Source of the DNA: Octopus sinensis | Lineage: Eukaryota | Assembly: GCF_006345805.1 (NCBI RefSeq) | Contig: NC_043019.1 | Span: forward strand, 12,523,360 to 12,587,359 | Length of the DNA: 64,000 nucleotides | Direction of reading: 5' to 3' | In this document: positions 2,546-53,000 of the stretch, in pieces | Position numbering within the stretch: the first letter of the stretch is position 1 | How the letters are laid out: each line of letters begins with the position of its first letter | Program-made: the position numbers and the translations under genes | The notes under the pieces: generated by a model | Database searches by the model: none | What the model saw: only the letters and a program-made list of their open reading frames with translations | Told to the model about the DNA's origin: nothing

Positions 2546-3345
2546 TTTTTTTTTTTATTATGGCTACCCCGTCGTTATCGAGTATGGCCATTGCACGAAG
2601 CTTAACTGTTACTGGTGCTGTGATCGAATGTGACTTTTTAGCCCAGCTAAAGATCTACAATGTCTTGTACAGAATTGGCAGCTAAAACCTTTACCAGTAA
2701 TAGCCGGCTGTAGTTGTAACTGGGCTTCATGTACCTTTGCATGTCGTTTAAGTCCTCCTGCCGAATTACACTCTCTTCCACATGCCCAAGAGACATGATT
2801 AGTATGGTGTGTTACACCACCACCAGTGGCCAGGTTGTCACTCATCTGTCTCGCTTTATGACTACGAAGATGACTCTTGAGTCCAGCTTTACTGAGGCAG
2901 GGTCTTGCACAGACACTGCATGTCAGCATCATAGGAAGACCCTTCCCATCTGGAAGTGTAACAGCGATGCCCTTCCTGACATCCTCCTTACTTTCTCCTG
3001 TGCAACTCGAAATTCTGAAAAGTAGCTGTCCCCTCGTGCACAATCCTTCTCCACCTGCTACGATCAATAGCTATGCCTTCCCATGTGTCAGGAGAGATGC
3101 ACAGACACTGCATGTCAGCATCATAGGAAGACCCTTCCCATTTGGAAGTGTAGCAGCGATGCCCTTCCTGACATCCCTCCTTACTTTCTCATGTGCGACT
3201 CGAGATTCTCAAAAATAGCTGTCCCCTCGTGCACAATCCTTCTCCACCTGCTACGATCAATAGCTATGCCTTCCCATGTGTCAGGAGAGATGCAAGCATC
3301 TCTTAAGGAAGCCTTCAGTAAGTCCTTATATCTCTTTTTTGGTTT
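2546..3345 (-). mobile_element. 5'-truncated RTE-clade LINE 3' end with three C2H2 zinc fingers, short 3'UTR and poly(A)
   Basis: Minus strand reads KPKKRYKDLLKASLRDACISPDTWEGIAIDRSRWRRIVHEG (RTE ORF C-terminal motifs), then CSVCARPCLSKAGLKSHLRSH, a degenerate WACGRECNSAGGLKRHAKVH, and CQFCTRHCRSLAGLKSHIRSQH; stop at 2609-2611; poly(A) near 2546-2556; internal ~192-bp duplication and frameshifts. Confidence 0.9.
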
Positions 3346-4264: not shown

Positions 4265-4854
4265 AGATCTTTACCTTTTGACCTACAGGTTTTAAAAATA
4301 ATTTTTTGTAACTAAACACTTTCAAACTGGTAGAATGTGTTATATAAAACATCTTTTACTCTCAACTTTTTTGAGAAAAGTTTATATTTACAAAGTTATT
4401 TCGTGTTAGAGTTGTCGTATTTCGGTAATTTCAACCAATCAATGACATGTATTCAGCTGAATAAAATTACTGCCGTTGTTTGTCGACGGTGTATTTTTCA
4501 TTTGTCACTGTTATTTATGACATCGTTTGTGCATTTGCACTGGTTTTAGATTTAAGGTTAGGGTTTTGGGGTTAGGGTTAGGGTTCTCATAAGTAACAGT
4601 GACAAATGAAAAATACACCGTGGGAAGTTCTTGTTGACAAACAACAGCAGTAATTTTATTCACGTCATTGATTGGTTGAAATTACCGAAATAGGACAACT
4701 TTAACATGAAATTATTTCGTAAATATAAGTTTTTCTCAAAAATGCTAAGAGTAAAAGATGTTTTATATGGCACATTCTACCAGTGTCCAAAGTTTGAAAG
4801 TGTTTAGTTACAAAAAATTATTTTTTAAATCTGTAGGTCAAAAGGTAAAGATCC
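4265..4854. mobile_element. Fold-back element with ~250-bp TIRs and central TTAGGG repeats
   Basis: AGATCTTTACCTTTTGACCTACAG... mirrors ...CTGTAGGTCAAAAGGTAAAGATCC; centre has TTAAGGTTAGGGTTTTGGGGTTAGGGTTAGGGTT; a solo right arm recurs at ~12540-12685. Confidence 0.85.
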
Positions 4855-12155: not shown

Positions 12156-12685
12156 TAACCATCCCATTTTGTTTCTGTTTTTTTTTTTTTGCTTACTTAA
12201 TCTGCCTGTTGACTATATTATTAGGCAATATGTCCTTTTTTTTTTTTACCTTAAAGATAGTAATGTATAGTTTTGAGGAGATTGAACTGCTATTTCTAGC
12301 AGGTTGAATTGTGGTGTGTAGGTAATGCGCTGAAAAAATTGTTTGATCTACATTCTTTTTATTGGTTATCCATTTTTTATATTGCGGAGTTTATGGTCCT
12401 AAAATGTTGGGACTTCAATAGGCACAAGAGCTGTTTTATAGATCGGCATATATAGGTGCAGACATGGCCGTTTGGTTAAGAAGCTTGCTTGCAACCACAT
12501 GGTTTCAAGTTCAGTCCCACCGTACGGCACCATGGGCAAATAACTTCGTAAATATAAACTTTTCTCAAAAACTCTGAGAGTAAAAGATGTTTTATATGAC
12601 ACATTCTACCAGTATACGAAGTTTGAAAGTGTTTAGTTACAAAAAAATATTTTCTAAATCTGCCGGTCAGAAGGTAAAGATCCCA

Positions 12686-13107
12686 AATGTCTTGTTTACA
12701 TAAGCTTTGAATTAAAATCTTCCACCAAACCTTAGTTATAATTTATGTTCCTAACACTAGCTTAATGATGACTAAGTTATTTTACTAAATTCTTTGTTAT
12801 AGTTAAAATTAATTAAAACAAACACAGAGTATCTCAATAGAAATAAGGTAACAAAAGGGTTAAAGTCACCATGATATTTTTAACTCTTTTGATAACCACC
12901 CAGCTGAAACCGCCTCTGGCTCTGAATACAAATGTCTTGTTTTCATAAGTTTTGAATTAAAATCTTCCACCGAACCTTAGTCACAATTAATGTTCCTAAC
13001 ACTAGCTTAATGATAACAAAGTTATTTTACTAAATTCTTTGTTATATTTAAAGTAATTGAAAGAAACACAGAGCATCTCAAAATAAATACAGTAAGGAAA
13101 GGGTTAA
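12686..13107 (+). mobile_element. piggyBac-like MITE, one truncated plus one full copy in tandem
   Basis: TTAA|CTCTTTTGATA...GGAAAGGG|TTAA at 12884-13103; a preceding partial copy ends AAAAGGG|TTAA at 12859; same family as 51291-51512. Confidence 0.75.
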
Positions 13108-23582: not shown

Positions 23583-23850
23583 AAACATGATGGGCTTCTT
23601 TCAGTTTCCGTCTACCAAATCCACTCATAAGGCTTTGGTCGGCCCGAGGCTATAGTAGAAGACACTTGCCCAAGGTGCCACGCAGTGGGACTGAACCCGG
23701 AACCATGTGGTTGGTAAACAAGCTACTTCCACACAGCCACTACTGCACCTATATATAATAATTATTATTTGAGGGAATAAAATCCAAACTTACAAGGAAA
23801 AAGAATTCAATTTAGAAATACTAAATTAAATTCCACACAATATAATATAT

Positions 23851-24114
23851 ATATAAAATATCAGAAAAAACCCACCTTTTATCAATTCAAAATGAATAAT
23901 TAAATTACACCATCTAGAAAATTACATATAATAGAAAAGTTAAAATTAAAATAACAATTAAAAAGTAAAGATTAAGTAAATTACAAAAATAATATAATGT
24001 ATATAATTGTTATTTTAATTTTAACTTTTCTATTATATGTAATTTTCTAGATGGTGTAATTTAATTATTCATTTTGAATTGATAAAAGGTGTTTTTTTTT
24101 CTTATATTTTATAT
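23851..24114. repeat. AT-rich inverted repeat (~115-bp arms)
   Basis: ATCAATTCAAAATGAATAATTAAATTACACCATCTAGAAAATTAC mirrored at 24030-24085. Confidence 0.85.
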
Positions 24115-24119
24115 ATATG

Positions 24120-24152
<33 letters not shown>

Positions 24153-25301: not shown

Positions 25302-25540
25302 AAGCAACAAGTATATCTTAGGTAATTTGGTACGATTGTTTCATGCTACTTCATTTTATTAAACATTGTAAGTATTACATCAGTTTTAAAATGTCGAGCA
25401 ATCTTCAGCCATTTATAGAAGTCTTATAAATGGCTGAAGATTGCTCAACATTTTAAAACTGATGTAATACTTACAGTGTTTAATAAAATGAAGTAGCATG
25501 AAACAATCGTACCAAATTACCTAAGATATACTTGTTGCTT
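25302..25540. mobile_element. Near-perfect palindrome (~116-bp arms), Penelope-like inverted terminal fragment
   Basis: AAGCAACAAGTATATC...ATTTATA-gaagtct-TATAAAT...GATATACTTGTTGCTT; each arm carries a hammerhead-like motif. Confidence 0.75.
25431..25514 (+). ncRNA. Candidate minimal type-I hammerhead ribozyme (mirror copy 25328-25411 on -)
   Basis: TGG-CTGAAGA-TTGCT...AGCAT-GAAA-C-AATC-GTA-CCA; core boxes in order, short stem I, U-U at the stem II base. Confidence 0.55.
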
Positions 25541-28712: not shown

Positions 28713-30169
28713 ATCACCCCACATTACTGTATGGTTAACACCATATAGTTTTTCTGGTGCATCTAAGTTAAGTACCACATTCAAGTAAATTCATTGGAAT
28801 TTACTTGAATCTTAATTGCTTTGATTATATATATATATATATATCATCATCACCATTTAATGTCTGCTTTCCATGCTGGCATGGGTTGGACAGTTTGAGT
28901 GAGGATTGGCAAGCCAGGAGGCTGCACCAGGCTCCAATCTTATCTACCAAGGTTTCTACATCTGATTGTCCTTCCTAATGCCAACCACTCTGAGAGTGTC
29001 ATAGCTGCTTTTTACATGCCGCTGGCATGGGGTTCCAATCAGGTGGTACTGGCATCGAATGGTGCTTTTTACGTGCAACTAGCATACACATATATATGTC
29101 TATATATGTACAGGTATGTGTGTGTGGGTGTGTTAATGTATCTGTCTATCCTTCCATCCATCCATTCTTCCTTTCTTCCTTGCCATTTCCACAATGGGGA
29201 ATTCCGTCAACACTTTTCAATCCAATAACATCAAGTGTAAAAGTTACACATCTCTGATGATTTGACATTATGTAACTAATGATGATCTTATCCGTTACCT
29301 GTTACTTGTTTCAATCAAAGGATTGTGACCATGCTGGGGCACTGCCTTATGTTAATGAAATGAGCCAAAGACGATTTAATTTAATATAGTTTAGAAAATC
29401 TTGTGTTTTGTTTTCTACACAAATAAATGTACATATACAGTTATATGCAAAGATGCACAATTTACACATATGCGTGTGTGCGTGTATATGTGTGTGTATA
29501 CATATTTGCAAAAATGAATAGAAATGGCTATTCTGATAATTTTCCCACTTTAATGATTAGATGTTTTATAAGCTTACAAAACGTGACTTTGATGGGAGTT
29601 TTTCACTTAAAGGCAGTTTTCATACCAATATCTTTAAGAGTTTGTTAGTCACTGTTTAAATAGTGAGTGTTGAATTACAAACATACATACATACATACAA
29701 ATACTAACAAGCACCTATACACATATATTTACATACACACACACACACTTGCATGCTGAGGCATGCTAGATCTATACACTGGAATCTCTCGTCTTATAAA
29801 AGTGATCATCTAAGTTCTAATGCAAAGGGAGTTTAGAATTCGCTTCCCCTTTCACAGTTGGAACCTGTCCACTTACCCTAGAGAAAGAAAGGCATATACA
29901 CCACAACATTCCTCTTAACTTAGCCCTCAATCCATTATTTTTTTTTTTACTAGTTTCATTCATGGACTGTGACCATGCTGAGCACTTTAGTGCATGCATG
30001 ACAGTACACATTTTTATGCTCACAGGGAGCCTCTGCACAGTTTCTGCGGCACGATCAATACTCAAAATTGATCGGGCCATGACTTGCCCCAGTGGCTGTG
30101 CACAACATTGGCATCAAGTATGGTACCACTCGGTTATAAATTGGTCTTCTCAGCTACGACATCCCACCC

Positions 30170-31107
30170 CCCAGCCGGCCCTTTTTTCCCCCATGTAAGG
30201 AACTCCGGCGGGCATTGCATATTGACACCATTCCCTGCGTTCTTCTTCCCCCAGTTTGTGTAGGAGAAAATATTACTAATTCTATAAATCTAACTGATGC
30301 ACTAGCATCACGCCACACAAATTCTACCCCCCACCCCACATCACTTCCACCGTTGCCACCACCACCACCACCGCCGCCACCACCATTTTGTATCATCACC
30401 TTCATTTATCTTGAATGGATGGATATTTCTGCTTTATGTGTTGTGATGTGATGCGGAAAATCCAGCCTCCTCCTCCTCTGCCTAAATCTCATCCATCTCT
30501 CACTCTTCCCCCCCCCTCTCTCTCCCCCTTCATTCTCAGTGTCAAATATACGGAAACGAAATGTCATTAGAAATCTTGCATACTGTGTGATACACTATAC
30601 ACACACATACACATGCAAATACATGCAAATAGACACACATACATACACAAATGCACAAAAGCAAGTTAGCTTGTTTATACACTCATACATCAACTTATGC
30701 ATGCATACACATTTGTGTGCATGTATGTATGTGTTGTGTGTGTGTGTGTGAGGTTAACAAGATTTTGTTAGTTCCACCTTATAACTACCGAAGTATGGCT
30801 ATGTTGTATACCTCAGCATACAAGTAATACCAACAACACCAACAACAACTAAAACAACATTTTTTTTTACTTGACAAAACTTAATATTGAAAGATGAATT
30901 TGATAAACATAGAATTAGTCACCATCACACACACACACACACACACAAATCCTCATTTATTCTGATAAAAATTCATCATACAAAACTATACACATATATA
31001 CATTACATATTCATGCATAAAGACACGTAAACAAATACAAATTCACAACTGCATACATACATGCATACACTCAATATGCACATATGCATACAATCAAGAT
31101 GCACACA

Positions 31108-31154
<47 letters not shown>

Positions 31155-31435
31155 CATGTATATATACCAAGAGCCACTTTGCAATGAAAACACTACAAGC
31201 ACACATGGACCTACAAATAAATATATGTGTGTGTGCATGCATGTGTGTATATATATATATATATGTGTGCGTGTGTGTGTGTGTATATATATATATGTGT
31301 GTGTGTGTGTGTAAGTGTATATGTGTGTGTGTGAATTTATATGTGTATATATATATGTGTGTGTGTGTATATATCTCTCTCTATGTATAATATATATTAT
31401 ATATATATATATATATATGTATCTCTATCATATAT

Positions 31436-31480
<45 letters not shown>

Positions 31481-32020
31481 GTATACATGCACACACACAG
31501 TATAACCTTTGCCGGACACAGATGGCCAGTGTGTATAATCTTGTCTAAAGCAAAATACCAATAGTGACCACCACCGCAACCACCACCACTCCAACTAAAA
31601 TAAACGAGGAGAGAATATTAATGGAAGCTGGCCAGTTTCAGGTTTTTCTTTGTCATAGAAACAGTTAATTTTTATCAACTTTTCCAAAGATAATCACGTC
31701 TTTTCATCGCAGCATCATAAGGCCATCATTGAAGAAGGTCGGCAAGAGGACGTAATTAAGTGCATGAACACCATCAATACACACAGACACACACACACAC
31801 ACACCATATACATATATGCAAACATATACAGACATACATGTACACACACACACATGTACACATACACACATGTATAATATATAAAACATTACAACATCTT
31901 GTATACTATTCTGAGCCATTGCAGAAACCTCTGTATGGTTGCTTTAATTGCTAGAGGCAACAGCCAAGTATGCCTCGAATCACACTCTACTGTCAAAGAA
32001 AGTGAAGATGGTCATGACTG
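30170..32020. repeat. Left arm (inner part) of ancient inverted duplication
   Basis: Collinear reverse-complement blocks with 38150-40920; see findings. Confidence 0.9.
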
Positions 32021-32168
32021 GAAGAAACAATAACATTGCATGTATGCACATGGTTCCGGGTTCAGTCCCACTGCGTGGCACCTTGGGCAAGTGTCTTCTA
32101 CTATAGCCTCGGGCCGACCAAAGCCTTGTGAGTGGATTTGGTAGACGGAAACTGAAAGAAGCCCATCG

Positions 32169-32212
<44 letters not shown>

Positions 32213-32479
32213 CGTGTATGTCTGTGTGTCTGTGTTTGTCTCCCTAGCATTGCTTGACAACCGATGCTGGTGTGTTTATGTCTCTGTTACTTAGCGGCTC
32301 AGCAAAAGAGACCGATAGAATAAGTACTGGGCTTACAAAGAATAAGTCCCAGGGTCGAGTTGCACAACTTAAGGCGGTGCTCCAGCATGGCCACAGTCAA
32401 ATGACTGAAACAAGTAAAAGAGATAAAGAGACACATGTATGCACACAAACACACACACTCTCTTTCAAATGCCCCTTTC

Positions 32480-32890
32480 TTCCATGCTTGCAATGGTCAG
32501 ACAGTTTATTGGGTCGGATTCTCTGTAGTTGGAAGTGGTTTATCTGGTATTTGTTGGGGGTAATCATCTAGGGATCGGTTGAATGCTGTGAAGTCACTTT
32601 CCCCCTTTATGTGTGCCTGGCACGATGTTGAAGAGAGCAGGGCCAATTGAGGTGAAATAGTTCTATCATAGTGTTTTGATACGACATGAACATTTCTATA
32701 GTGGATGGATGGCAGGGGGCAAAGCCTCGGACGAATTTTAAAGATCGGCAATGTTGATGTAATATTTTCCACATCATACAGATGATATAGAGCTCACAGC
32801 AGTGGTGGAGGGAGCAGAGCCTGAGCTTTTTGAGTCGATCCCAATAGTCAAGGCTTGTCATGTCATCCTTCGCAGACCTCTGCCAAGCAG
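32480..32890 (-). mobile_element. CR1/L2-type LINE RT C-terminal fragment (frameshifted)
   Basis: LDYWDRLKKLRLCSL...YIICMMWKIL and FNRSLDDYPQQIPDKP match the typical Y.ERL..L.LYSL...W / FK..LD.YL..VPDQP pattern. Confidence 0.8.
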
Positions 32891-33054
32891 CTCATTTTAA
32901 GATAGATACGCGAGTAAAATTACTAATAGAGAAACGAAAATAAACTTTGGAAACAGCAACGCCACCATAGGTTACATGGAAACGATGAATGTGTTTTCAA
33001 GGGAGATAATCAAAGAACGTAACATTGTAATACTTCATGTAAAGTAAATATATC

Positions 33055-33262
33055 AAATGAAAAATCCTGCAAGAATCCATAAAAATTCCTGGATCACTAC
33101 CAAAATGTCATCATCTGTTCCTTGTGTCTTTACTAATTTTTCCTGCATGTTTCATCAAATACCCTTCATAACTTTTGGAGTTATTCTGCACACAGACAGA
33201 CAGATGGACAAACCACCGCTGATGAAAATATAACCTCTTTTCTCTGGTGGAGGTAATTAAGA
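33055..33262 (+). mobile_element. Helentron-associated (HINE-like) element end
   Basis: CATAACTTTTGGAGTTATTCTGCACACAGACAGACAG...GAAAATATAACCTC-n-GGAGGTAATT terminal hairpin; the same end appears reversed at ~62577-62685. Confidence 0.5.
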
Positions 33263-33309
33263 AAGGAAGAAGGAAAGCTTGTGTATCACCTTAACTGTGT
33301 ACATAATAT

Positions 33310-33356
<47 letters not shown>

Positions 33357-33554
33357 TATTATCAGTAAAGTACCAAGGAAAAAGCAAACAATTAGTCAAG
33401 GCAGGACAAGGACGTTTGATTTTATTTATTCAATCTAAAAATTTAGCTACAAACGAACGGTAAAAATAGCACAAACTAGTTATGTTAGTCTATACAGCTG
33501 TTTATATATGTGTATGTGTTTTGTGTATACACACGTGTGTACATACATACATAC

Positions 33555-33606
<52 letters not shown>

Positions 33607-34154
33607 GTATATATTAGGTAGAGGGAAAATCAAAATTCAGACAGAACGAGTATTTCAAGTCATTGAGCATAATTTAGTTAGGGTAATTTGGTGAATTTGA
33701 AGTCTTACAGCTGTTTCTGGGATAACCCAAGTGGTAGGTTAGCTTGTCCATTCACTGGGTATTCCGTCATCAGAGACAAAGTATGAATATTTTAGACAGG
33801 GAAAATTTACAGTTTACAAGAAATTAAATTCACAGTTTATAAAGAATAAAATAGAAGAATAAAGAGTAAAAGTTGTTAGAAGAACTATATTATTCTCCTG
33901 CCAATATTCTTCTATTTTACTCCTTTATTCTTCTATTTTATTCCTTATAAACTGTAAATTTTCCCTGTCTAAAATATTCATACCTTGTCTCTGATGGTGG
34001 AATACTCAGTGCATGGACATGCTAACCTACCACTTGGGTTATCCCAGAAACGGCTGTAAGACTTTAAATTCACCTTACCCTAACTAAATTATGCTCAATG
34101 ACTTGAGATACTTGTTCTGCCTTGGTTTTGATTTTCCCTCTAATCAATATATAC
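33607..34154. mobile_element. Fold-back (~240-bp arms) Penelope-like element with hammerhead motifs
   Basis: Arms 33607-~33870 and ~33915-34154; follows a (TA)n tract. Confidence 0.8.
33702..33777 (-). ncRNA. Minimal type-I hammerhead ribozyme (mirror copy 33987-34062 on + is degenerate)
   Basis: GTCT-CTGATGA-CGGAATACCCAGTG...CACTTGGGTTATCCCA-GAAA-CAGCTG-TA-AGAC; palindromic stem III ACAGCTGT; GUA triplet. Confidence 0.7.
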
Positions 34155-35838
34155 CTGCAATAATGGAACCCTAAAATGGATCCCTTGATCCCATCAGGGG
34201 ATTTTTAGGGGGCTGTACCTCTGAAAAACCTAAACCTTGTGTATAATACACACCCCTTCCCTAACTTGAGTCGTGAGTAATTAAGCCAGCAGCACCTAGT
34301 CGGACAAACACTTCCACGCATGCGTAATACAATAATGGTGATGTTCTTAACTGTTATATGGGAATGTAAATATGTTTGCAAATTGTTTTTGTTACATGTT
34401 ATTCTGTGTTCTGGATACTTTTATTTTAATAAATGTTGCTTACTGCAAGTTATGGATGATTCTTTTATGACTTCATAGCTTTCAGGCTTAGCTTAAGGTA
34501 TTTTCGCGCCCAACATCACAAAATGCGTCTGAATAAACATTGCTGGACAGCAAATAGAGACTCGGGCATTGCTTAGAAAATATTTTTCATTTTTAACCTT
34601 GTAGATAGTATGCACTAGGGATATTGACCTTTAAATTTTTAGAAAAAAATGCGGATTATACTCGAGGATTTATGGAACTTAAAGATATATATATATACGT
34701 TTAAATATTTGTTGTGCAAGATTTTTTATGTGAAGTCGTGTGTGTTGAAACAGATATTGTTATATTTCGGAATGGTCATATTGCCAGTTTAGCCAATAAA
34801 AACACACGCACTATATATTTGGTGTTATTTTGCTTCAGTGATATTTATTTTTTACATTAATCTAATGTAGCTTGCTAACCAACCACATGGTTGCGGGTTC
34901 AGTCCCACTGCGTGGCATCTTGGGCAAGTGTCTTCTGCTATAGCCCGGGCCGACAATGCCTTGTGAGTGGATTTGGTAGACGGAAACTGAAAGAAGCCTG
35001 TCGTATTATAGTATATATTATATATATTGTGTGTGTGTGTGTGTGTGTGTTTGTGTGTCTGTGTTTGTCCCCCCTAGCATTGCTTGACAACCGATGCTGG
35101 TGTGTCTACGTCCCCGCCACTTAGGGGTTGCAAAAGAGACCGATAGATAAGTACTGGGCTTACAAGAATAAGTTCCGGGGTCGATTTGATCGACTAAAGG
35201 CGGTGCTCCAGCATGGCCGCAGTCAAATGACTGAAACAAGTAAAAGAGTAAAAGAGAATATATATATATATATTATATAATCAATATTTGGCAGAAAAAA
35301 ACAGAGTGACTCGAGGTGTGAGAGTTTCATGTGTTAGCATTTATTGAACAGACTATTGACAAACCCATGTATATATATGTGTGTATGGTGCTATACTGTG
35401 CTGTGGTATGTAATATTGTGTAATTAATACATGCATCTATATATTTATTTGTCTTGTGTCCATCTGTTAATGTAATGTCATCACAATCTGCATTGTTGAT
35501 GACAATTAAAAAAAAAAGTATTACATTTTATCAGTTGTTCTATCAATGAAACTTTTGTTTGGTTGAAGAATTAACAAATGACAGGCACCAATCTCTTTCG
35601 TAGTAAACTCACATATGGAAACTAAATATGCACACGCTCATATGAATAAGAATATACTTAGTTATACACAGCCTGTGTACACACATTCACAGATGCTTGT
35701 ATATATACACACACATATATATATATGGTTATATGTAGACAACACATTTATAGAACGCTAATACATTGACATACAAACATCTATGTATGTATATGCATGT
35801 ATCTCTCTCTCTCTCTCTCTCTCTCTGTATATATATAT

Positions 35839-35880
<42 letters not shown>

Positions 35881-36049
35881 TATTTTTGTGTGTGTGTACA
35901 CACACTGAAATGAATAAAAGAATAAATGTGTATATATATATATTTTGTGTGTATATATGTGTATGTATGTGTGTGTGTATGTATATGTGTGTATGTATAT
36001 ATGTGTGTATATATATATGTGTATGTGTGTATATATATATATATGTGTG

Positions 36050-36101
<52 letters not shown>

Positions 36102-37590
36102 CGTGTGTATATATATGTGTGTGTATATATATATTGAGAGAGAGAAAGAAAGTGCTGTGGATTGCTTGAAGCATCATGGAATATATATAGAAAATCAGTC
36201 TGCTTCAGATGATAGCAAGGCTGAAAAAAAATGTTTAAATATCAAAAGCAACAATGAAACTAGGATACTGAAAATGTTAACATAGAAATATTTTAGTCCA
36301 GATATTTTTTTTTACAAAGCCTATAAAAAAAAAATAATTATGAGTGAGAGAGTGAGACAGATTAAATGTCTATATGTCCATTTTGTTGCCATATCAAATC
36401 TTTGTGTGATATTTGAATGACCATGTGTGTAAAAAGTGTAGGATTGTGTGTCACAGGCTGTCTATGTCTCTGGTTCCAATGACTTATTTACAAGAAGGAA
36501 TTGGGTCAAGTTTTGTGGTGCACAGTTGCTCTAAGGAGTGGTTATTTGTAGGAGTCATGATTGGTTGTCATTCAGTTAGTGAGTTTGGAACTTAACCTCA
36601 GTGGATTATTGCTTCTCTACTAAGGATAGAGACTAAATTCTCAGAAATCAACCAAGGGTTTTACTGGGATGACGACTTTAAAAATTCATTGTATAATCCC
36701 CAAACTGGTTTGCTACAAATTAAAATCATATTTCCTTTATATCATGTGTCAGACATTAACCATTTCGTTTGACTCTTTTACGATATTGACTTAATCTAGT
36801 TGTGATTAATACTTGACTTGTCACTAAAGAAGTGAAACAAAACCAATACCTGTGTTTTTATTGGCAGAATGTCTCTCCTAAAATACATTTGTTTTTAACA
36901 TACTCACACACACATATATATGAGCATATTTATGTATATAGATCCACACACACTCACATTTGATATGAACTTGTACATGTGTGTGTATGAATATATATAT
37001 ATATATCATCATCATCATCATCATCGTTTAGCGTCCGTTTTCCATGCTAGCATGGGTTATATATATATATGGTGTGTGTGTGTGTGTGTGTGTGTTTGTA
37101 TGTATGTATGTGTGAGTGTATATACCAGAGTAAGAACATAAATGTGAAACAAGGTGGGAAAAAGAGTACTCATCATCATTTAATGTCAATTTTGCATGTT
37201 GGCATAGGTTGGACAGCTTGACAGGAACTGGCATGACCAGAGCCTGAACCAGGTTTCATAGTCTGTGCTGGCTTGGTTTCTACAGCTGGATGCCCTTCCT
37301 AATGCTAACCACTTTGCAGAATGTATTGGCTGCTTTTTACATGACACTATCACCAGTGCTTTTTACATGGTACCATCAACAGTGCTTCTTGCATGGCACC
37401 ATGACCAGTGCTTCTTATGTAAAACCAGCACCAACACTGGTGCTTTTTATAGGACACTTTGTTTTTAGGATATCATTGCTTTTGTGGTGGGCAGTTCTTC
37501 TTGAGTATAGCAGTGTGCCACATATCTCGGTCCTCTGTCATCTCCTTTGTAAGGCTCAGCGTTTTGAGCTCACCCTTCATATACACATGC

Positions 37591-38345
37591 ACTCATGCTC
37601 ATACACACACACACACACACAAACACAATCTTATTAATCCAGATCAGTTCTCACTGAGTAAACCAGACCTGTGATCAAAGGCATTCTAGCCATGACCGTC
37701 CACACTTTTTTTTTTCTAAAGAACAAAGTATGATCTGAGGGCAATTTAGCTGATTTGGCTGTTGTTTCTAGGAGGTCAAGCAACCATGCAGAGGCTCCAT
37801 CATTGGCTCATTTTAGCATACAATGTACTATAGTGTTCTACACACACACTCATGCTCTCACACACACAAACACAATCTTATTAATCCAGATCAGTTCTCA
37901 CTGAGTAAACCAGACCTGTGATCAAAGGCATTCTAGCCATGACCGTCCACACTTTTTTTTTTCTAAAGAACAAAGTATGATCTGAGGGCAATTTAGCTGA
38001 TTTGGCTGTTGTGTTCTAGAGGTCAAGCAACCCATGCAGAGGCTCCATCATTGGCTCATTTTAGCATACAATGTACTATAGTTTCTACACACACACACTC
38101 ATGCTCTCTCACACACACACACAACACAATCTTATTAATCCAATCAGTTTCTCACTGAGTAACCAGACCTGTGATCAAAGGCATTCTAGCCATGACCGTC
38201 CACACTTTTTTTTCTAAAGAATAAAGTATGATCTGTGGGCAATTTAGCTGATTTGGCTGTTGTTTCTAGGAGGTCAAGCAACCATGCAGAGGCTCCATCA
38301 TTGGCTCATTTTAGCACACAATGTCCTATAGTGTTCTACACACAC
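37591..38345. repeat. Tandem triplication, ~250-bp unit containing a SINE fragment
   Basis: ACTCATGCTC units start at 37591, 37848 and 38097; copies differ partly by scattered single-base indels. Confidence 0.9.
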
Positions 38346-38939
38346 ACACACACACATATACAGACATTCTATATATATATATCTGGTTTTGATACACTTG
38401 TTAACTCTGTCCTTTTGCTGGCCTTCTTAAACAAACTACGTACTTGTGATGCTGTAATGAAAAGATGTGATTATCTTTGGAAAAGTTGATAAAAATTAAC
38501 TGTTTCTATGACGAAGAAAAACCTGAAACTGGCCAGCTTCCATTAATATTCTCTCCTCATTTATTTTGGTTGAGTGGCATTGGTGGTGGTGGTGGCGAGG
38601 AGTGGGGGTCATTATTTGGTAGTTTGCTTTATGCAAGATTATGCACACTGGCTGCCTGTGTTTGTCTGGCAGAGCTTATGCTACAATTGTGTGTGTTTTA
38701 TATGTATATATATATGTGTATATGTATGTATATATATATATATATATAATATATAATATATATATATATATATACATACATATACACATATATATATACA
38801 TACATACATGTATACATACATATATACATACATACACACACACATATATATATAGATATATACATACATAAATACACACATACACACACATATATATATA
38901 CACACATATGCATACATATATACACATATGCATACATAT

Positions 38940-38970
<31 letters not shown>

Positions 38971-39429
38971 TATTTATATATATACACACATATACATACG
39001 TATATATATATATACACATATACATACATATATATATACACATACATATATAATATATACATATATAAGTGTTTGTATCTCTCTCTGCATTACAAAGTAG
39101 CTAGTTGTGTATGTGTATATATAATATATATATATATATATATAATATATATATATATATATCATCATTTAACGTCCGCTTTCCATATATATATATGTGT
39201 GTGTATGTGTAATGTGCATGTTTTGTGTGAATTTGTATTTGTATCTTTAAGCATGTATGTATGCTTGTATATAGTTTTTTTGATTTCTTTTTTTTTTTCA
39301 GAATATGTGATGGTTGTCTATGTCTATTATCTCTGTTTATCTCCTTTAATATTAAGCTTTATTGGGTAAAAAAATATGTTCTAATTTCTGTTTATGCTTG
39401 TTATACATACTTTCATGCTTGTTATATAT

Positions 39430-39466
<37 letters not shown>

Positions 39467-39790
39467 GCATATATATATATGTGTGCATATATATATATGC
39501 ATATGTGCATATATATATATGCATATGTGCATATATATATATATGTGCATATATATATATATATATATGCATATATATATATATATACATAGTGTATATA
39601 TATATGTGTTTGCATATGTGTATATATATATATGTGTATGCATATGTGTATATATATATATGTGTATGCATATGTGTATATATATATGTGTTTGCATATG
39701 TGTGTATATATATGTGTGTGTGTATTTATGTATGTATATATTTATATATATATATGTGTGTGTATGTATGTATATATGTATGAATACATG

Positions 39791-39830
<40 letters not shown>

Positions 39831-40171
39831 TGAGATATACACTATAACACATGCATCAGTATCTATAAAGAAATTAACCTGCACACAAGCATATACATAC
39901 ATACACACATGCATGCACACACATGTGGGTCTGCATCTATTACTTGTACATGTGTTTCAGTACACTATCTCAAATGCATACATGTATGCGTGTATTTATA
40001 TATGTTTTATGTCACACATTTACAATATGAAAGAATTTTAATGATGTTTCCATATGTTCAGCATTGAGAATCAGGAAGAGGATAGACAGATAGATAGACA
40101 GACACAAAGATAGAGCAATAGATAGATAGACTGCTAGAGCAATAAATAGACAGATATATATATATATATAA

Positions 40172-40240
<69 letters not shown>

Positions 40241-40920
40241 TATATATATATATATTATATAGAAATAGAGAGAGAGAGAGAGAGAGAAAACGAGAGAGAT
40301 AATATAGATAGAGATATAGAGAGAGAACGAGAGAGAGAGAGATAGACGGATAGAGAAATGGATAGATAGATAGGTAGACAGGCAGATAGATAGATAGATA
40401 TAGAGATGGATGGATGGCTAGAGAGATGGATAGAGAGATAGGTAGATGGTGGATGGATAGATATGTAGATGGATGGATGGATAGATAGAGGGATGGATAG
40501 ATAGGTAGATGGATGGATGGATAGATAGAGGGATGGATAGAGAGATGGTTAGATGGATAGCTAGCTAGCTAGATAGATAGATAGAGTGATAGGTAGAGAG
40601 AGAGCAGGTAGAGGAAGGTGGTGTTGGATTTTCCATATCATATCACAATGCATAAAGCAGAAATATTCAACCATTCATGATAAATGAAGATGAGGATATA
40701 TACCGAGGAGGGGGTGTTGTTGCTGGCAGCAATACTTGTGGTGGTGGTGGTGGTGGTGGCAGTAGTGGAGGTGGTGGGTGAGTGAGTGTTGATATTTAAA
40801 TTAGATTTATGGAACTGGGAATATTTTGCTTTATCTAAATTGATGGAAGAATGCAGGGAATGGTGTCAGTATGCAATGGCCATGGGAATTTGTTATGTGG
40901 TGACATGGGCCTGGCTGGGA
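38150..40920. repeat. Right arm (inner part) of ancient inverted duplication, expanded by microsatellites
   Basis: Reverse complement of blocks in 30170-32020, separated by long (TA/TG/TAGA)n tracts. Confidence 0.9.
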
Positions 40921-43089
40921 TTAAAAAGTTCACATAAGCAAGTATGCCTGTGTGGTAAGAAGTTTGCTTCCCAACCATATGGTTCTGGGTTCAGTCCCAC
41001 TGGGTGGCACCTTGAGCAAGTGTCTTCTACTATAGCCATGGGTTGACCAAAGCCTTGTGAGTGGATTTGGTAGATGGAAACTGAAAGAAGCCCATAGTAT
41101 ATATACATATATATATATATATATATACTTTTGATACATATTTAAAATAATATAAATTAATTAATTTTATGTATTGGCTTATGTTTTTCATTGTCTGATT
41201 TGCCTAATAGTGGTTTTATCTCTAATTTAATATAATATAATATATTTATACTATAAAATTGGATTCAATCCTAAATCTGATTTTCCCCTGTAAGTTTGGA
41301 TTTATTCCCTAATATTTTATTATATATATATATATATACACATACATACACTGTTACACCCATGGAAAACAGATGTTAAATGATGATGATGGTGATTGGT
41401 GTTGATGCCATGTAAAAAGCACTCGACACACTCTGTAAAGTGGTTGGTGTTAGGATGGGCATCCAGCTGCAGAAATCAAGCCAAAACAAACTATGGAACC
41501 TGGCGTGACCCTTGGCCTTGCCAGTTCCTATCAAACTGTCCAACCCATGCCAGCATGGAAAAACTGACCTTAAATGATGATGATGATGATGATGACACAT
41601 ACAAACACACCCAAATGTGTATATGTGTGTGCGTGTATATATTCATATATATATACTCTCGGAGTGGTTGGCGTTAGGAAGGGCATCCAGCTGTAGAAAC
41701 ACTGCCAGATCTGACTGGCCTGGTGCAGCCTTCGGGCTCCCCAGACCCCAGTTGAACCGTCCAACCCATGCTAGCATGGAAAGCAGACGTTAAACGATGA
41801 TGATGATGATATCAGCCGAAATTGCGAGGATAATCTGGTGTTTGACTGAGGAAAGAAAGCTTCGAATGACGTGTCCTTGTTTTCTTTGTATCGTCTATCT
41901 GGATGTTTTGTTGTCCCATTTTTGTATCACCTAGCTGCCCGGATATTTTGCGTTCTTGTCCCATTTTGTATTTTATACACACACACACACACACACATAT
42001 ATATAAACACGCAAATGTACATTAATTCCTATGTGCTTATGTATGTACCTACATATATATATGTGTGTGTTTGTGTGTACAGACACATGTATAAGCACAA
42101 TCACACACACACATGCACACACAATATTTCTTTGTAATGTTGCACTAGGCTAGCAATTTTAGAGGTGAGGACAAGACAATTACGTCAACTCCAGTGCTCA
42201 GCTTATACTTATGTTATTGACCCTGAAAGGATGTTATCGAACCTGAAAGGATAAAAGGCATAGTTGGCCTCGGTGGAATTTGAACTCACTGTTTAATGAA
42301 TCAGAATAAATACCACAAAGCATTTTTTTTTGTGTATGATACTCTAATGATTCTGCCGGCTCACTGCCCTCCACACATGCAGAGTATTAAACGATATATC
42401 AGTTTAGCATGGGTTACAAGCTAACCTGTACCCCACCTCTACATACATAATATACGTACCTATATCCAATGACAAAAAGAAAGGATCAAATCTCTCTCCC
42501 TCTCTTCACAATGACAGAGCTATTTATTAGACCAAGGAATAGAGGTGTGTTTGCTATTCTTTCTAAACAGGTTAACTCACGAAACCTATTGTTAATCACA
42601 ACAGGGGCATTTTCTCTGTAATTATTTTCTATTTTATGTCAGGTGTAAATATGGCTGTGTGTATAGACACAGGTGTGGTTTCTCGACCACGTCGTTCCAT
42701 GTTCAGTCCCACTGCGTGGCACCTTGGGCGAGAGTCTTCTACTATAACCTTAGGCCAATCAAAGCTTTGTGAGTGAATTCTGTAGATGGAAACTGAAAGA
42801 AACCCATTGTATATCGAAACGTGGAGTAGATAAAACAGGGGACAACTGATAAAGGGAATGTTCTTTATGTTGCATGTCTCGTTTCTCTGTTTTTTTCTCG
42901 TTGTTTGAAAAAAAGGTTCATTTTCTATGTTTTTGTTTTTATGTTTTCGTTTCTCATTGTGTCCCTGAAAGTTTTTAAGGGCATCCGGCTATAGAAAATC
43001 TGTGTCACTGAATTCCATCCAACCTAGGCAAGTGTGGAAAAGTGCACAATAAAACGGTGGTCCTTCATCATCAGTGACTTGGATTTTTT

Positions 43090-43745
43090 TATTTAAGGGC
43101 CCTTAAGTAGGGGAAATGAGTAGTGATTGTGTTTGTGTATGGGAGGAGGGATGGTAGTGGTGGTAGGTTTGTGTGTGGTGAAAAGTTTGTTGGTGGGATA
43201 GGGTTTACGTTGGCAGTAGTAGTGATGGTGGTAGAAATGATGGTGTGGTGGTGGGGATGGCAGTTATGATGGTGTTGGTGATGGTAGTTGTGATGGTGGT
43301 AGTGGTAGTAATGATGTTGTTGTTGGTGGTGGTGATGGTAGTTATGGTGGTGGTGGTGGTGATAGCAGTTATGATGGTGGTAGTGGTAGGGATGGTAATG
43401 ATGGTTGTGGTGGTTATGATGATGATAGTGGTGGTGATGGTAGTTATGATGGTGATGGTGGTAGTGGTAGTAATGATGTTGTTGTTGGTGGTGGTGATGG
43501 TAGTTATGGTGGTGGTGGTGATAGCAGTTGTGATGGTGGTAGTGGTAGGGATGGTAATGATGGTTGTGGTGGTTATGATGGCAATGATGATAGTGGTGGT
43601 GATGGTAGTTATGGTGATGGAAGATAGGTGGCAAGAGTGGGGGATGAATATTAGACAGTAAGAAAGATGTCAACAGGGAGCTCAGGAGGAGTAGGGGAGA
43701 TATTTGCAGGTAGATGATGGTGGTGGTGGTGGTAATTGTGGTAGA
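43090..43745. repeat. Cryptic (GGT/GAT)n trinucleotide tract
   Basis: Low complexity; source of the His-rich and Val/Met-rich ORFs. Confidence 0.9.
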
Positions 43746-44039
43746 GGTGTTTGATCCTTAGGGGTAGGGTTTAGTAGCATCAGGTATGGTTGAGTACATT
43801 GAGGTGATCTTTCACTGGTGTGGGGACCAACAGAGGTCTTGTGTTTAAGAATGAAATAATTAACACCATAAAGAGGAAAGGTGTTGTAGTAGGAGTGGAG
43901 GTGTTGATCGAGAGGGAGAGAGATGTCATAAGGGGCTGGAGTTGGGGTTGGGACCCTTGCTCACTTTTGACCTCCCTGTCTAACAAATTTGGGAACTTGA
44001 CCCTGCTACTAAATTTTAATTGTAGACCTGCTAAATTTT

Positions 44040-44630
44040 CTGCAACCAGCACAGCCACAACTACCATCACCACTACCAACACCACCACCAATACCACTGA
44101 CATCACCACCACCACTGACACTTCCACCAGCACCACCATCAACACCACCAGTCACCATCACCATTGACACCACTACCACCACCACCACAACTACCACCAC
44201 CACAATAACAACACTACACAGCAGCAGCATTACATTGCTGTCATTAACACTGCACCATCATGCTACCACCTCTACACTATCACCAACACCACTCCACCAC
44301 TGTTGCCAGTACCATCACATCATACCCAGCAGTTACCACTGCCACTACATCACCACCAGTATCACTACCTCCACCACCTCCACCATTGACAGACCACACC
44401 TGGCATCACTACTATGACCACCTCCTTTGCTACTACTGCAACACTGCTGCCACACCCAACACTACACTATCACCATCACCACCACCAGTATCACCCTACT
44501 ATAGGTGTTGTTGGTACCACTAGTACTATTAATAATGATTAGATAATCTAGTAGAATTCCTAGAAACTTTTGCTACCACCAAAACCCACCATCACCACCC
44601 CACCACCACCACTACCAATACTACTAGTAT
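44040..44630. repeat. Cryptic (ACC/ACT)n trinucleotide tract
   Basis: Low complexity. Confidence 0.9.
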
Positions 44631-44709
44631 TACGCCCCAAACTACTTCTAATACTATTGCATTTAACATTTATTTTTACCTCCCTCACCAACTGTTACAA
44701 GGGAGCCTC

Positions 44710-44970
44710 TATGTGGTCACTTAATTTGCTAGAAATCTTACCAGACCTCAGCCCCTTTGAGTTCTTTTTCTGGGGTCTGCTAAAGGAGAAAGTGTACTCA
44801 ATGAAAATCACAGATGCAGCACACTTGATGGAATGCATAAAGAGCGAATGTGCTCAAATTGAGGCCAGTGTGCAATTATTGCATTGAGTTCTCATAAATC
44901 TTGCGAAGTGCATTGACCTCTGCATCACAAATGGTAGAAACCATATTGAAGATGTTGTTTGTTATTAGCA
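44710..44970 (+). mobile_element. Tc1/mariner-superfamily transposase C-terminal fossil
   Basis: PDLSPFEFFFWGLLKEKVY...IDLCITNGRNHIE matches the SPDL.P.DFFLWG.LK.KVY...CI...G.H.E motif; contains an in-frame stop. Confidence 0.85.
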
Positions 44971-45024
44971 AGACACCTTTTCCTCTGTCTCTGTCTCACT
45001 CTAACCTTTCATCCTCTGACATAA

Positions 45025-45910
45025 GATCCCCTCCTCCAATTCCCCTCCCCTCCTCCAATGCCCCCCTCCTTCAATAATCCTCCCCTCCTCCAATGCCCCT
45101 CCCCTCCTCCAATGCCCCTCTCCTCCTCCAATGCCCTCCCCTCCCCGATGCCCCTCCTCCAATGCTGCCCCTCCCCTCCTCCAATTCCCCTCCTCTCCTC
45201 AAAAGCCCCCTCCTTCAATAATCCCCCCTCCTCCAATGCCCCTCCCCTCCTCCAGTGCCCCTCCCCTCCTCCAATGCCCCTCTCCTCCTCCAATGCCCCT
45301 CTCCTCCTCCAATGCCAATCCCTGCCCTGATGCCCATCCTCCAATGCCCCTCTCCTCCTCCAATTCCCCTCCTCTCCTCAAATGCCCCCCTCCTTCAATA
45401 ATCCAACCCTCTCCAATGTCCCTCCCCTCCTCCAATGCCGCCTCCCTTCCTCCAATGCTCCCTCCTCTCCTCCAATGCCCCTCCCCTCCTCCAATGCCCC
45501 TCTCTCCTCCATGCCCTCCCCTCCCCGATGCCCCTCCTCCAATTGCCCCTCCCCTCCTCCAATTCCCCTCCTCTCCTCAAAAGCCCCCTCCTTCAATAAT
45601 CCCCCATCCTCCAATGCCCCTCCCCTCCTCCAGTGCCCTCACTCCTCCAATGCCCCTCTCCTCCTCCAATGCCCCTCTCCTCCTCCAATGCCCTCCCTCC
45701 CTGATGCCCCTCCTCAATGCCCCTCTCCTCCTCCAATTCCCCTCCTTCCTCAATGCCCCCCTCCTTCAATAATCACCCTCCTCCAATGTCCCTCCCCTCC
45801 TCCAATGTCCCTCCCCTCCTCCACTGCGCCTCCCTCCAATGCTCCTCCTCTCCTCCAATGCCCCTCCCCTCCTCCAATGCCCTCTCCCCTCCTCCAATGC
45901 CCCCTCCCCT
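45025..45910. repeat. Pyrimidine-rich minisatellite (CCCCTCCTCCAATG-like units)
   Basis: About 900 bp of variant 11-16-nt units with a recurring CCTTCAATAATC higher-order marker. Confidence 0.9.
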
Positions 45911-47457
45911 CTTATAATTCCTTGTCTTGCAAGTTACTTGGTGACCCATCTCATGCTGGTGCCACTTAAAAAAGCATCCAGTCCATGCTGTAAGGGTGGT
46001 TGGCATTTGGAAGGGCATCCAGCTGTAAAAACCCTGCCAAAACTGACCTCACCTGTGCTAGTGCCAGGTGAAAAGCACTCAGATCCACACTACCGGGTGG
46101 TTGGCGTTTGGAAGGGCATCCAGGTGTAAAAACCCTGCCAAAACAGACGCAGTAGTCTCGTCAGCTCTTGTCAAACCTTCCAACCCATGCCAGCATGGAA
46201 AGCAGATGTTGAACGATGATGATGATGATGATGATTTCAACTGAATAAAATGTTGAAAATTTTATGTGTATTTCTTGAAAATATACATTTTGCCTGTGTC
46301 CAGACTTTAAGAACACCTTGTATAACTACCACCACCACCACCACCACTACCATCAACACTGTCTTCATTATATCTTCATGCCGTTATACAAAAGTGGAAA
46401 ATAAGACTTTCTCCTGTTCCTTCTCTTCCTCTTCTTCTCATTTCCCCACCCCCTCCTCTTCTCTCTTAATACCCTTTCTAAAACCTAAGTGTTGTTTTTT
46501 TTTTGTTTTGTCTTGTGATTCTGATTTTGTTTTTTAACACATCCACTTCTTCCTTCGACCACCACCACCACCACCACCACCACCATCACATCATCATCAT
46601 CTACCATCATCATCATTATTTACCACCACCACCAGCAGCTCCACCACCATCATCATATCATCATTATTGTTATCTACCACCATCCCTACCAGTACCACCA
46701 CCACTACCACCATCACATCATCATCATCATCTACCATCATCATTATTATTTACCACCACCACCACCAGCTCCACCATCATCATCATCATCATTATTGTTA
46801 TCTACCACCACCCCTACCAGCAGCGCCACCACCACCACTACCACCATCAACATCATTATTATTATCTGCCACCACTACTCTATACTTTATGCAATATACT
46901 TCAAGTGTATGCTTAATAGCACCTAAGGAAACTACCACTTAGCTGCCATGCCGTTCCTCTATGCGTATGTACTGTATGTATATATGTATATGTGAGCACT
47001 TCTACTGTACATGACTGTGGTTTGTGTATGTATGTGTGCGTGACAGGTATTATTACTTGTAGAAGATATTTTTAAAAAAATATTTTTACTCACAATTTTT
47101 TTTTTGTTTCATTTCTTTTTTTCATTTTCATTCTATTTTATACTGTTGACCTGGTGGGTGGAAATAACTATTTTTGATGATGGCCTACCCCTGAAGGCAG
47201 GCACTTTATTTCATTTATTATTATTATTATAATTATTATTATTATTATTATTATATTATTTCATTAATGATGGTTTTTAAACTCCCATTAAAAATACTTT
47301 CTTATGACTTATACCTAGTTTTTTTTTTATCAGTCCTCGATTTAGACCTGTTCCTGAATGGTTTACTTCCTCAATGTCAGCTGGTATATCTCCTACTTCC
47401 TTAGCAGCAGCACGAGGGTTGTGTGGATCAGGTCAGCATGGGAATAAAAGCATAAAT

Positions 47458-49090: not shown

Positions 49091-49190
49091 NNNNNNNNNN
49101 NNNNNNNNNNNNNNNNNNNNNNNNNNNNNNNNNNNNNNNNNNNNNNNNNNNNNNNNNNNNNNNNNNNNNNNNNNNNNNNNNNNNNNNNNN
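49091..49190. other. Assembly gap (100 N)
   Basis: N run truncating a family A SINE. Confidence 1.
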
Positions 49191-51601: not shown

Positions 51602-51734
51602 TATGATGCGTCATATGTGTCTGAAAATGGGGAACTTTCTACAAAAACTGGCAAAGTGAAACGCAGGTTTCGAGAATTCTGCACGCTACAACAGAAACTT
51701 GAAGAAAGGAACGTCTATAAGAAATGCTTGAAAG
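51602..51734 (+). CDS. SNX19: Internal coding exon, PX domain of a sorting nexin (SNX19-like)
   Basis: Acceptor TTTTTTTATTTGTCTTTACAG|, donor AAAG|GTAAAT; 133 nt, phase 0 to phase 1; YDASYVSENGELSTKTGKVKRRFREFCTLQQKLEERNVYKKCLK resembles SNX19 YETA...VNRRYREFLNLQTRLEEK..RKFIK as recalled. SNX13/14/25 cannot be fully excluded. Confidence 0.75.
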
Positions 51735-53000
51735 GTAAATACTTACGTTTACATTATAAGATATTGATTTTAGCAACTTCAAAAGATAACAAATAAACCG
51801 TTTTTAACTCTGGAACTCAAAGTACACAAAGCATTTGATACTATCACGCAAAAAGATAAAAGACTTAGAAGATCAATAAACCCTGTTGACCCCAACCTGC
51901 TCATCACTGTCCTAGATTCTCTGATACGAACTTCTTTAAAAAAGGGGTCAAAATTAAAACCTTTCATCAAAATTTCCTGCTAATTTTTCTTCCAAATCCC
52001 AGCTTAATAATCAATCTTTTATCTTTTACTTGTTACAGTCGTCAGACTGCGGCCATGCTGGGGCACGTCTTGAAGAATTTTTAGCCGAGGGGTTTGACCC
52101 CAGTACTTCTTATTTTTTAAGCCTGGTACTTATTCTATCAGTCTCTATTACTGAACTGCTAAGTTACAGGCATGTAAACACACCAACATCAGCTGTCAAG
52201 TGGTGGTGGTGGTGGTGGTGGGGCACACATACACACATAGATATACATACATACATATACAATACATACATACATACATATACCATATATACATACATAT
52301 ACAATACAATACATACATACATACTATATGTGTGTGTGTAAGGTGACTAAGTACAGAAAAAATGCTCTCATATATCTGTCAGCAGAATGAGTATATACAT
52401 CGAAGTGTACAGTATTATATACCCATTACAGCTGATTATATCAATCAGTTTTGCACAAGGGGTTTAACAGTCATCATATTTCATTCCATAATGGCCATCT
52501 CCGATGAGCATAGGATTACATAACTGAGCCGCTAGTGTGAAAGTAGTTGGTAAGATCAGCAATAATGGATATATAATACTGTACGCTTTGATTAATATAT
52601 ATATATATATATTAATCAAGGAGTGGCTGTGTGGTAAGTAGCTTGCTTACGAACCACATGGTTCCAGGTTCAGTCCCACTGCGTGGCACCTTGGGCAAGT
52701 GTCTTCTACTATAGCCTCAGACCGACCAAAGCCTTGTGAGTGGATTTGGTAGATGGAAACTGAAAGAAGCCCGTCTTATATATGTCTATATATGTGTTTG
52801 TGTGTCTCTGTTTGTCCCCCACCAACATCATTTGACAACCGATGCTGGGGTGTTTACGTCTCCATAACTTAGTGGTTTGGCAAAAGAGATGGATAGAATA
52901 AGTACTAGGCTTACAAAGAATAAGCCCTGGGGTCGATTTGCTTGACTGAAGGCGGTGCGCCAGCATGGCCATAGTCAAACGACTGAAACATGTAAAAGAG

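Follow-up and report, generated by a model that had tools for sequence, protein, structure and literature searches.

An old inverted duplication with a 95% identical 130-nt core in intron 1 of an octopus SNX19-like gene

The inverted duplication and its host gene

We describe an inverted duplication in a 64-kb stretch of the Octopus sinensis genome (the window, to which all positions refer), in which one 130-nt tract, here called the core, is far more alike between the two arms than the sequence around it. The window is AT-rich (36-44% GC), and self-repeated sequence, either simple or resembling short interspersed elements (SINEs), makes up 59% of it. The only protein-coding exon found in the window has clean splice sites and matches residues 799-842 of an O. 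bimaculoides protein (XP_014784879.2, LOC106879713, 1147 amino acids (aa)) at 98% identity. This protein, which carries PXA and PX domains, is the product of the closest match of the host gene, and the cuttlefish homologue carries the name SNX19. The orthologous gene spans 105 kb in O. bimaculoides and 244 kb in Sepia pharaonis. Gene structure was derived by local tblastn of the O. bimaculoides protein against the window with 100 kb upstream and 50 kb downstream, and comprises six exons with an intron 1 of 67.3 kb and an intron 2 of 23.4 kb; exon 1 alone encodes 798 aa and is 92% identical to the O. bimaculoides protein. Judged by these matches, the host gene is a plus-strand sorting-nexin gene of the PXA-PX type, SNX19-like and orthologous to O. 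bimaculoides LOC106879713; we found no literature on SNX19 in cephalopods. The inverted structure (30170-40919) lies entirely within intron 1, 10.7 kb upstream of exon 2. Since exons 1 and 2 are both on the plus strand and bracket the structure, the duplication is intronic, and both arms would belong to one primary transcript, transcription itself being assumed.

Inverted similarity was sought by BLASTN of 29000-35600 against 35600-42500; the output of a repeat finder was dominated by TA/TG microsatellites. Minus-strand matches were obtained at 30170-30483/40919-40606 (70% over 324 positions, E 3e-28) and at 31250-31773/38950-38384 (77% over 567, E 6e-120), the second of them partly TA/TG microsatellite. 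In a sensitive plus/plus comparison of arm A with reverse-complemented arm B, the unique anchors came out in mirror order. Together with shuffle tests, these results bear out the mirror-ordered inverted similarity described in an earlier account made from the letters of this DNA, the sequence-only reading, which had listed eight paired blocks. Each block was aligned locally and compared with 200 shuffles. Five are strong, namely 30170-30293/40919-40801 (72% identity, z 22), 30391-30483/40698-40606 (82%, z 39), 31499-31587/38682-38585 (77%, z 22), 31586-31721/38577-38443 (94%, z 97), and 31899-31967/38321-38253 (75%, z 17). Two more are weak but collinear: 30532-30586/40071-40022, with a z of 6.9 and beaten by one shuffle, and 30856-30929/39380-39306, with a z of 7. 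The eighth, 31165-31205/39065-39105, found no support, as only a 15-nt match with a z of 3.9 lies beside it, within a microsatellite. The count of 64 identities among 74 positions given earlier for 30391-30464/40625-40698 is exact, and the listed pair 31606-31707/38457-38558 proved identical at 100 of 102 positions.

A segment of intron 1 of about 1.9 kb was thus copied locally in reverse orientation, and the copies now lie 6.2 kb apart (Table 1), forming two collinear reverse-complement arms at one locus on either side of a spacer. Homology reaches its outer limits near 30170/40919 and its inner limits near 32023/38184; BLASTN and inspection of the ends revealed none beyond them, either past the adjoining SINEs or into the loop. 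The event is old, as had been proposed: leaving the core aside, alignable sequence is 74.5% identical between the arms (Jukes-Cantor distance 0.31), a divergence similar to that of the window's oldest SINE copies. After the duplication, the arms acquired different microsatellite arrays and arm B underwent a tandem triplication. Arm B owes its greater length to TA arrays (38699-39162, 39423-39826) and to a GATA/AT/AG array (40081-40601). Because the triplicated units of its inner end are so alike, this triplication must be much younger than the inversion.

Differing microsatellites and younger SINEs had been named as signs of age. The arms do differ in their microsatellites, but neither contains a SINE; instead, SINEs adjoin the inner end of arm A (32047-32431, 24 nt away) and the outer end of arm B (40932-41127, 12 nt away). 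These two belong to one family, are both on the plus strand and are 92% alike over 143 nt, and their placement reflects either coincidence or a common insertion preference. The loop, expected to be about 6 kb and measuring 6.16 kb, holds SINEs at 32047-32431, 34867-35260, and 37170-37355, a foldback transposable element (TE) at 33607-34154, and a TA/TG array at 35800-36130.

Inverted arms around a 6-kb internal region, with SINEs adjoining one end of each, also fit the outline of a single large and old transposon with long terminal inverted repeats, or of two copies of a dispersed TE, and paired arms can arise as an assembly artefact. We regard this whole group of origins as extremely improbable. 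Searches of the genome assembly (2.72 Gb, 13,516 contigs) with 30160-30490, 30500-31060, 31490-31790, and 31592-31721 found only the two local copies, plus low-complexity CCA/CA matches. The search recovered arm B at 70% identity, and the foldback element at 33607-34154, included as a positive control, gave more than 1000 first-look candidates; other copies of the arms would therefore have been seen. An origin of the arms from a long dispersed TE, which the sequence-only reading had itself named among the findings that would overturn it, is rejected by this copy number. Neither a transposase nor any other Pfam domain was detected in the four open reading frames (ORFs) tested, two in the loop and two at the outer edge of arm A, and the loop consists mostly of later SINE and foldback insertions. 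No direct repeat is evident by eye in the sequence at the outer ends, where no formal search for target-site duplications was made. An assembly artefact is excluded by the arm identity of 74%, since haplotype and read-folding artefacts leave near-identical arms. The inner block had been called a shared old SINE (about 31900-32020/38160-38330). The homology is real, but the rest of the genome offers just six weak matches to segment 31880-32046, and a SINE origin is therefore not shown.

The 130-nt core

Aligned between the arms, the core shows no gap and 123 identical positions out of 130 (about 95%). The five alignable blocks outside it are 79, 68, 70, 70, and 82% identical; these values are homogeneous (chi-square p = 0.16) and pool to 330/443. 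Given this homogeneity, the non-core blocks need no constraint and are merely what stays alignable between microsatellites, and most of both arms appears to have decayed neutrally. The core differs sharply from them (Fisher p = 7e-8). Its tightest 112 nt contain 4 mismatches, whereas the binomial probability of 4 or fewer at 25% divergence is 9e-10. The 130 nt are free of indels, in which the flanks are rich. The sequence-only reading had seen very uneven identity and had proposed block-wise constraint; the unevenness resides in this one block, and only the core departs from what the remaining blocks lead one to expect. A tract of about 5% divergence within arms that have diverged by 25% cannot be chance, and needs either purifying selection on both copies or late gene conversion.

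The kind of change that separates the two copies is equally distinctive. All seven differences are transitions, compared with 63% of the differences in the flanks (p ~0.04), and five of the seven fall at CpG sites. Every one of the four CpG dinucleotides present in either copy differs between the copies, having decayed in one of them, and this suggests that much time has passed since the two were identical. Outside CpG sites, the divergence is 2/122 (distance 0.017) vs 0.31 elsewhere in the arms. The core has a GC content of 33% and its immediate flanks 46-50%, except for the short right flank in arm B, which has 38%.

Like a conserved non-coding element (CNE), the core has no coding potential, with stops in all six frames and a longest frame of 32 aa. 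The earlier statement that the arms share no ORF is confirmed by their reading frames; none of the ORFs tested has a Pfam match, and no homologue of the arm B ORF was found in a collection of 5.8 billion proteins. Rfam yielded no match in the core at E<=1; elsewhere in the region it gave mir-297-like, microsatellite-driven matches, all below the gathering score. The core has no local fold beyond that of shuffles in either copy or on either strand (z -0.8 to +0.3). A hairpin at 30385-30485 on the plus strand (z -2.35) is not kept in arm B. An exact-pattern scan of metagenome contigs with the core found no match.

Table 1. Positions of the duplication, its parts, and the exons of the host gene.
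Feature	Position	Strand	Remarks
Core, copy A (130 nt, 33% GC)	31592-31721	+	123/130 identical to copy B, without indel
Core, copy B	38443-38572	-	plus strand (host-gene sense) is the complement of copy A; aligned as 38572-38443
Arm A (~1.85 kb)	30170-32023	+	~48% alignable to arm B; remainder microsatellite/low complexity (30590-30760, 30978-31490)
Arm B (~2.74 kb)	38184-40919	-	reverse complement of arm A
Outer homologous block, arm A	30170-30506	+	pairs with 40919-40583; 70-82% identity; (CCA)n tract mid-block
Outer homologous block, arm B	40583-40919	-	pairs with 30170-30506
Weak collinear block	30517-30586	+	pairs with 40086-40022, 67-71%
Weak collinear block	30856-30929	+	pairs with 39380-39306, 74%
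Left flank of the core	31499-31591	+	pairs with 38682-38573; 77/97 aligned positions identical (79%); ends in (CCA)n tract
Inner homologous block, arm A	31882-32023	+	pairs with 38338-38184, ~70-72%
Tandem array (247 bp x3)	37611-38347		units ~94-97% alike; unit is the inner end of arm B
Loop/spacer (6.16 kb)	32024-38183		largely later insertions
Host gene, exon 1 (aa 1-798)	-18073..-15668 (window-relative)	+	tblastn
Host gene, exon 2	51602-51735	+	aa 799-842, start of PX domain; acceptor ttacag/TAT, donor AAG/gtaaat
Host gene, exons 3-6	75094-79546 (window-relative)	+	tblastn

Explanations for the core

We propose, at a probability of roughly 0.42, that the core is a non-coding and probably cis-regulatory element that has been kept in both copies. 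The 130-nt AT-rich tract would have been a functional non-coding element already before the duplication, and purifying selection would still be acting on it in both arms. It would most likely be an orientation-independent cis-regulatory element, such as an enhancer- or silencer-type protein-binding module, and it is this independence of orientation that would have allowed the inverted copy to be retained. The pair may act like two redundant 'shadow' copies in one intron. Under such constraint, the mutable CpG sites of the core would have decayed while nearly all other positions stayed unchanged, and the 130-bp duplex that the two cores could form in the pre-mRNA would be a by-product of the shared intron.

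Late gene conversion between the arms is a nearly as probable alternative, over which we slightly favour selection. On this account, the duplication was neutral and involved functionless intronic DNA, and, long afterwards, a single repair event without crossover transferred about 130 nt between the arms and reset the divergence there. The core does have the form of a conversion tract, being short, sharply bordered, free of indels, typical in size, and low in divergence between paralogues that are diverged all around it; inverted repeats a few kilobases apart are classic conversion partners, and no feature related to function (ORF, RNA family, fold, or complementarity to ribosomal RNA (rRNA)) was found in the core. 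Its differences can be read in two ways. Transition-only changes, mostly at CpG sites, are the first to be expected in a young neutral tract, whereas the decay of all CpGs with other sites almost untouched is more suggestive of prolonged constraint than of brief neutral evolution. We estimate that a young neutral tract would show four of four CpGs decayed against 2/122 other sites with a probability of about 0.02-0.4, depending on CpG hypermutability. Recombination is limited by mismatches, diverged partners suppressing heteroduplex formation and strand invasion. At the time of conversion that the core's divergence implies, the flanks would already have been about 17-20% diverged; at about 20%, strand invasion should have been inefficient and heteroduplex strongly suppressed, which favours selection. 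So does base composition: recurrent GC-biased conversion would be expected to enrich a tract in GC, and the core is the opposite, with 33% against 38-50% in the flanks. Finally, an AT-rich, sharp-bordered intronic tract of at least 100 nt has the look of a CNE, which also speaks for selection; candidate CNEs shared by squid and octopus, of 100 bp or more and 95% identity or more, have been published, and about half of these were localised to gene features (PMC9023564). Several points weigh against selection on both copies. Constraint is read from two paralogues of one genome only, and one conversion tract of ordinary length would look no different. The all-transition pattern is marginally unusual. 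For both copies of a duplicated regulatory element to be kept for long at about 98% non-CpG identity is uncommon, and the core offers no more than presumed TAAT, GATA, and ETS-like motifs.

Two further explanations assign the function to RNA, and we consider both improbable, the second more so. The cores may have been kept complementary by selection, so that the plus-strand pre-mRNA would form a 130-bp stem looping out 6.7 kb; this stem would be targeted by ADAR, give rise to small RNAs, or help in processing the intron. Both cores lie within one intron of a plus-strand gene, and the duplex predicted for plus-strand RNA is near-perfect (-207 kcal/mol), with five of the seven differences accommodated as G.U wobbles and two as C.A mismatches. 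Coleoids edit RNA very heavily, and the predicted stem would be expected to attract ADAR. However, the proportion of wobbles is not significant (P = 0.23), no process is known to require exactly this stem, and at least 17 inverted SINE pairs (120-411 nt, 85-94% identity) are found in the same part of the intron, so that the potential for double-stranded RNA (dsRNA) is commonplace there and not special to the core pair. Together with the missing local fold, these pairs weaken the RNA structure that the sequence-only reading had offered beside a regulatory module, and we give little credence to the idea that the SNX19-like pre-mRNA forms a conserved long-range stem within its intron, not made of repeats, that is a dedicated substrate of ADAR or Dicer or controls splicing. 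Fainter still is the case for a duplicated small non-coding RNA gene, such as an intronic C/D-box small nucleolar RNA (snoRNA). The minus strand of arm A does read UGGCC-UU-AUGAUGC ... CUGA-AACU-GGCCA from 31725 to 31629, with C-box-like and D-box-like motifs and a 5-bp terminal stem. Arm B, whose copy has the sense orientation of the host gene, no longer has this stem, and the conservation runs 37 nt past the putative 3' end. There is no Rfam family even at E<=1 and no microRNA-like hairpin (z -0.8 to +0.3), and the longest Watson-Crick run to the genome's own 18S, 5.8S, and 28S rRNA is 9 nt, compared with 8-13 nt for shuffles. With the stem lost in the sense copy and no rRNA guide complementarity above chance, a C/D-box snoRNA identity is largely refuted.

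The ribosomal DNA (rDNA) used for the guide comparison is a complete 18S-5.8S-28S unit on an unplaced contig (C11589:28300-39950). A motif from the 3' end of 18S occurs in 15 copies with the same 1-nt variant, scattered over many chromosomes and unplaced contigs. One such scattered locus carries just the last quarter of 18S, and the copies may be dispersed 18S-derived fragments.

Other elements of the window and relation to known systems

The foldback element of the loop is 548 nt long and palindromic, with 84% identity between its arms, and resembles a miniature inverted-repeat transposable element (MITE) or foldback TE; copies of its large, dispersed family are 84-89% alike and often stand in inverted pairs. 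Further self-complementary palindromes lie at 531-789, 4266-4853, 23840-24126, and 25302-25540, with arm identities of 76-96%, and the arms of the one at 4266-4853 are shared with 12538-12686. Also in the loop, two overlapping minus-strand ORFs at 32509-32891 (…DYWDRLKKLRLCSLHH…) have no Pfam match and presumably resemble the C-terminal tail of ORF2 of a retrotransposon without long terminal repeats (non-LTR). Another ORF, at 44564-44884 on the plus strand and ending ...LPDLSPFEFFFWGLLKEKVY..., likewise has no Pfam match and presumably resembles the C-terminus of a mariner/Tc1 transposase. It lies in a GC-rich region (43089-46000, 52% GC) that looks like a minisatellite, with a GC skew of -0.65 at 44-46 kb and long, low-complexity open frames on both strands (His/Tyr-rich, Pro-rich). 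Near the left end of the window, at 2609-3070 (minus strand) and 2906-3294, a C2H2 zinc-finger ORF (Pfam zf-C2H2, zf-C2H2_4) overlaps a tandem duplicate of about 195 bp and 96% identity; the ORF at 2609-3070 could be a pseudogene or encode a TE-borne finger protein. Young direct duplicates are present at 3360-3747/6001-6388 (95%) and 61729-62182/62129-62582 (98.7%), and an assembly gap of 100 N falls within a SINE at 49091-49190.

Should the core be under constraint in both orientations, it would be a candidate regulatory module within an intron of a cephalopod, a group in which few enhancers have been located, and the pair would provide a natural experiment on orientation independence and redundancy. 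Should it be a conversion tract, it would show that repeats differing by about 20% can still exchange sequence by ectopic conversion. In neither case are we dealing with a new kind of system.

The arms resemble other local inverted segmental duplications of animals (palindromes with a spacer) in having reverse-complement, collinear copies a few kilobases apart at one locus, with later insertions and microsatellites. Well-studied palindromes homogenised by conversion exceed 99% identity, whereas the octopus pair is much older and more decayed (74%), and only a 130-nt patch has stayed alike between its arms. With CNEs, the core shares a non-coding sequence of more than 100 bp, an identity of about 95%, a high AT content, and sharp borders against GC-richer flanks. 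Its intronic position is like that of many squid open-chromatin peaks and of about half of the squid-octopus CNE candidates mapped to gene features (PMC9023564). Conservation across species is what defines a CNE, whereas the core is conserved between paralogous copies in one genome. Ectopic gene-conversion tracts are similarly short, sharply bordered, and low in divergence within diverged paralogues, and their partners may likewise be inverted and close; the core differs from them in having unusually diverged flanks and in being AT-rich rather than GC-enriched. Intronic inverted repeats that form dsRNA, such as inverted Alu or SINE pairs and the hairpin RNA (hpRNA) loci of Drosophila, which are ADAR or Dicer substrates, also lie in one transcription unit and have a predicted near-perfect duplex of at least 100 bp. 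Unlike these, the core pair is not made of repeats, is not known to yield small RNAs or edited transcripts, and is only one of many potential duplexes in its intron. Collectively, the structure is a single ordinary relic in a huge, repeat-rich intron and a new instance of a known structure type.

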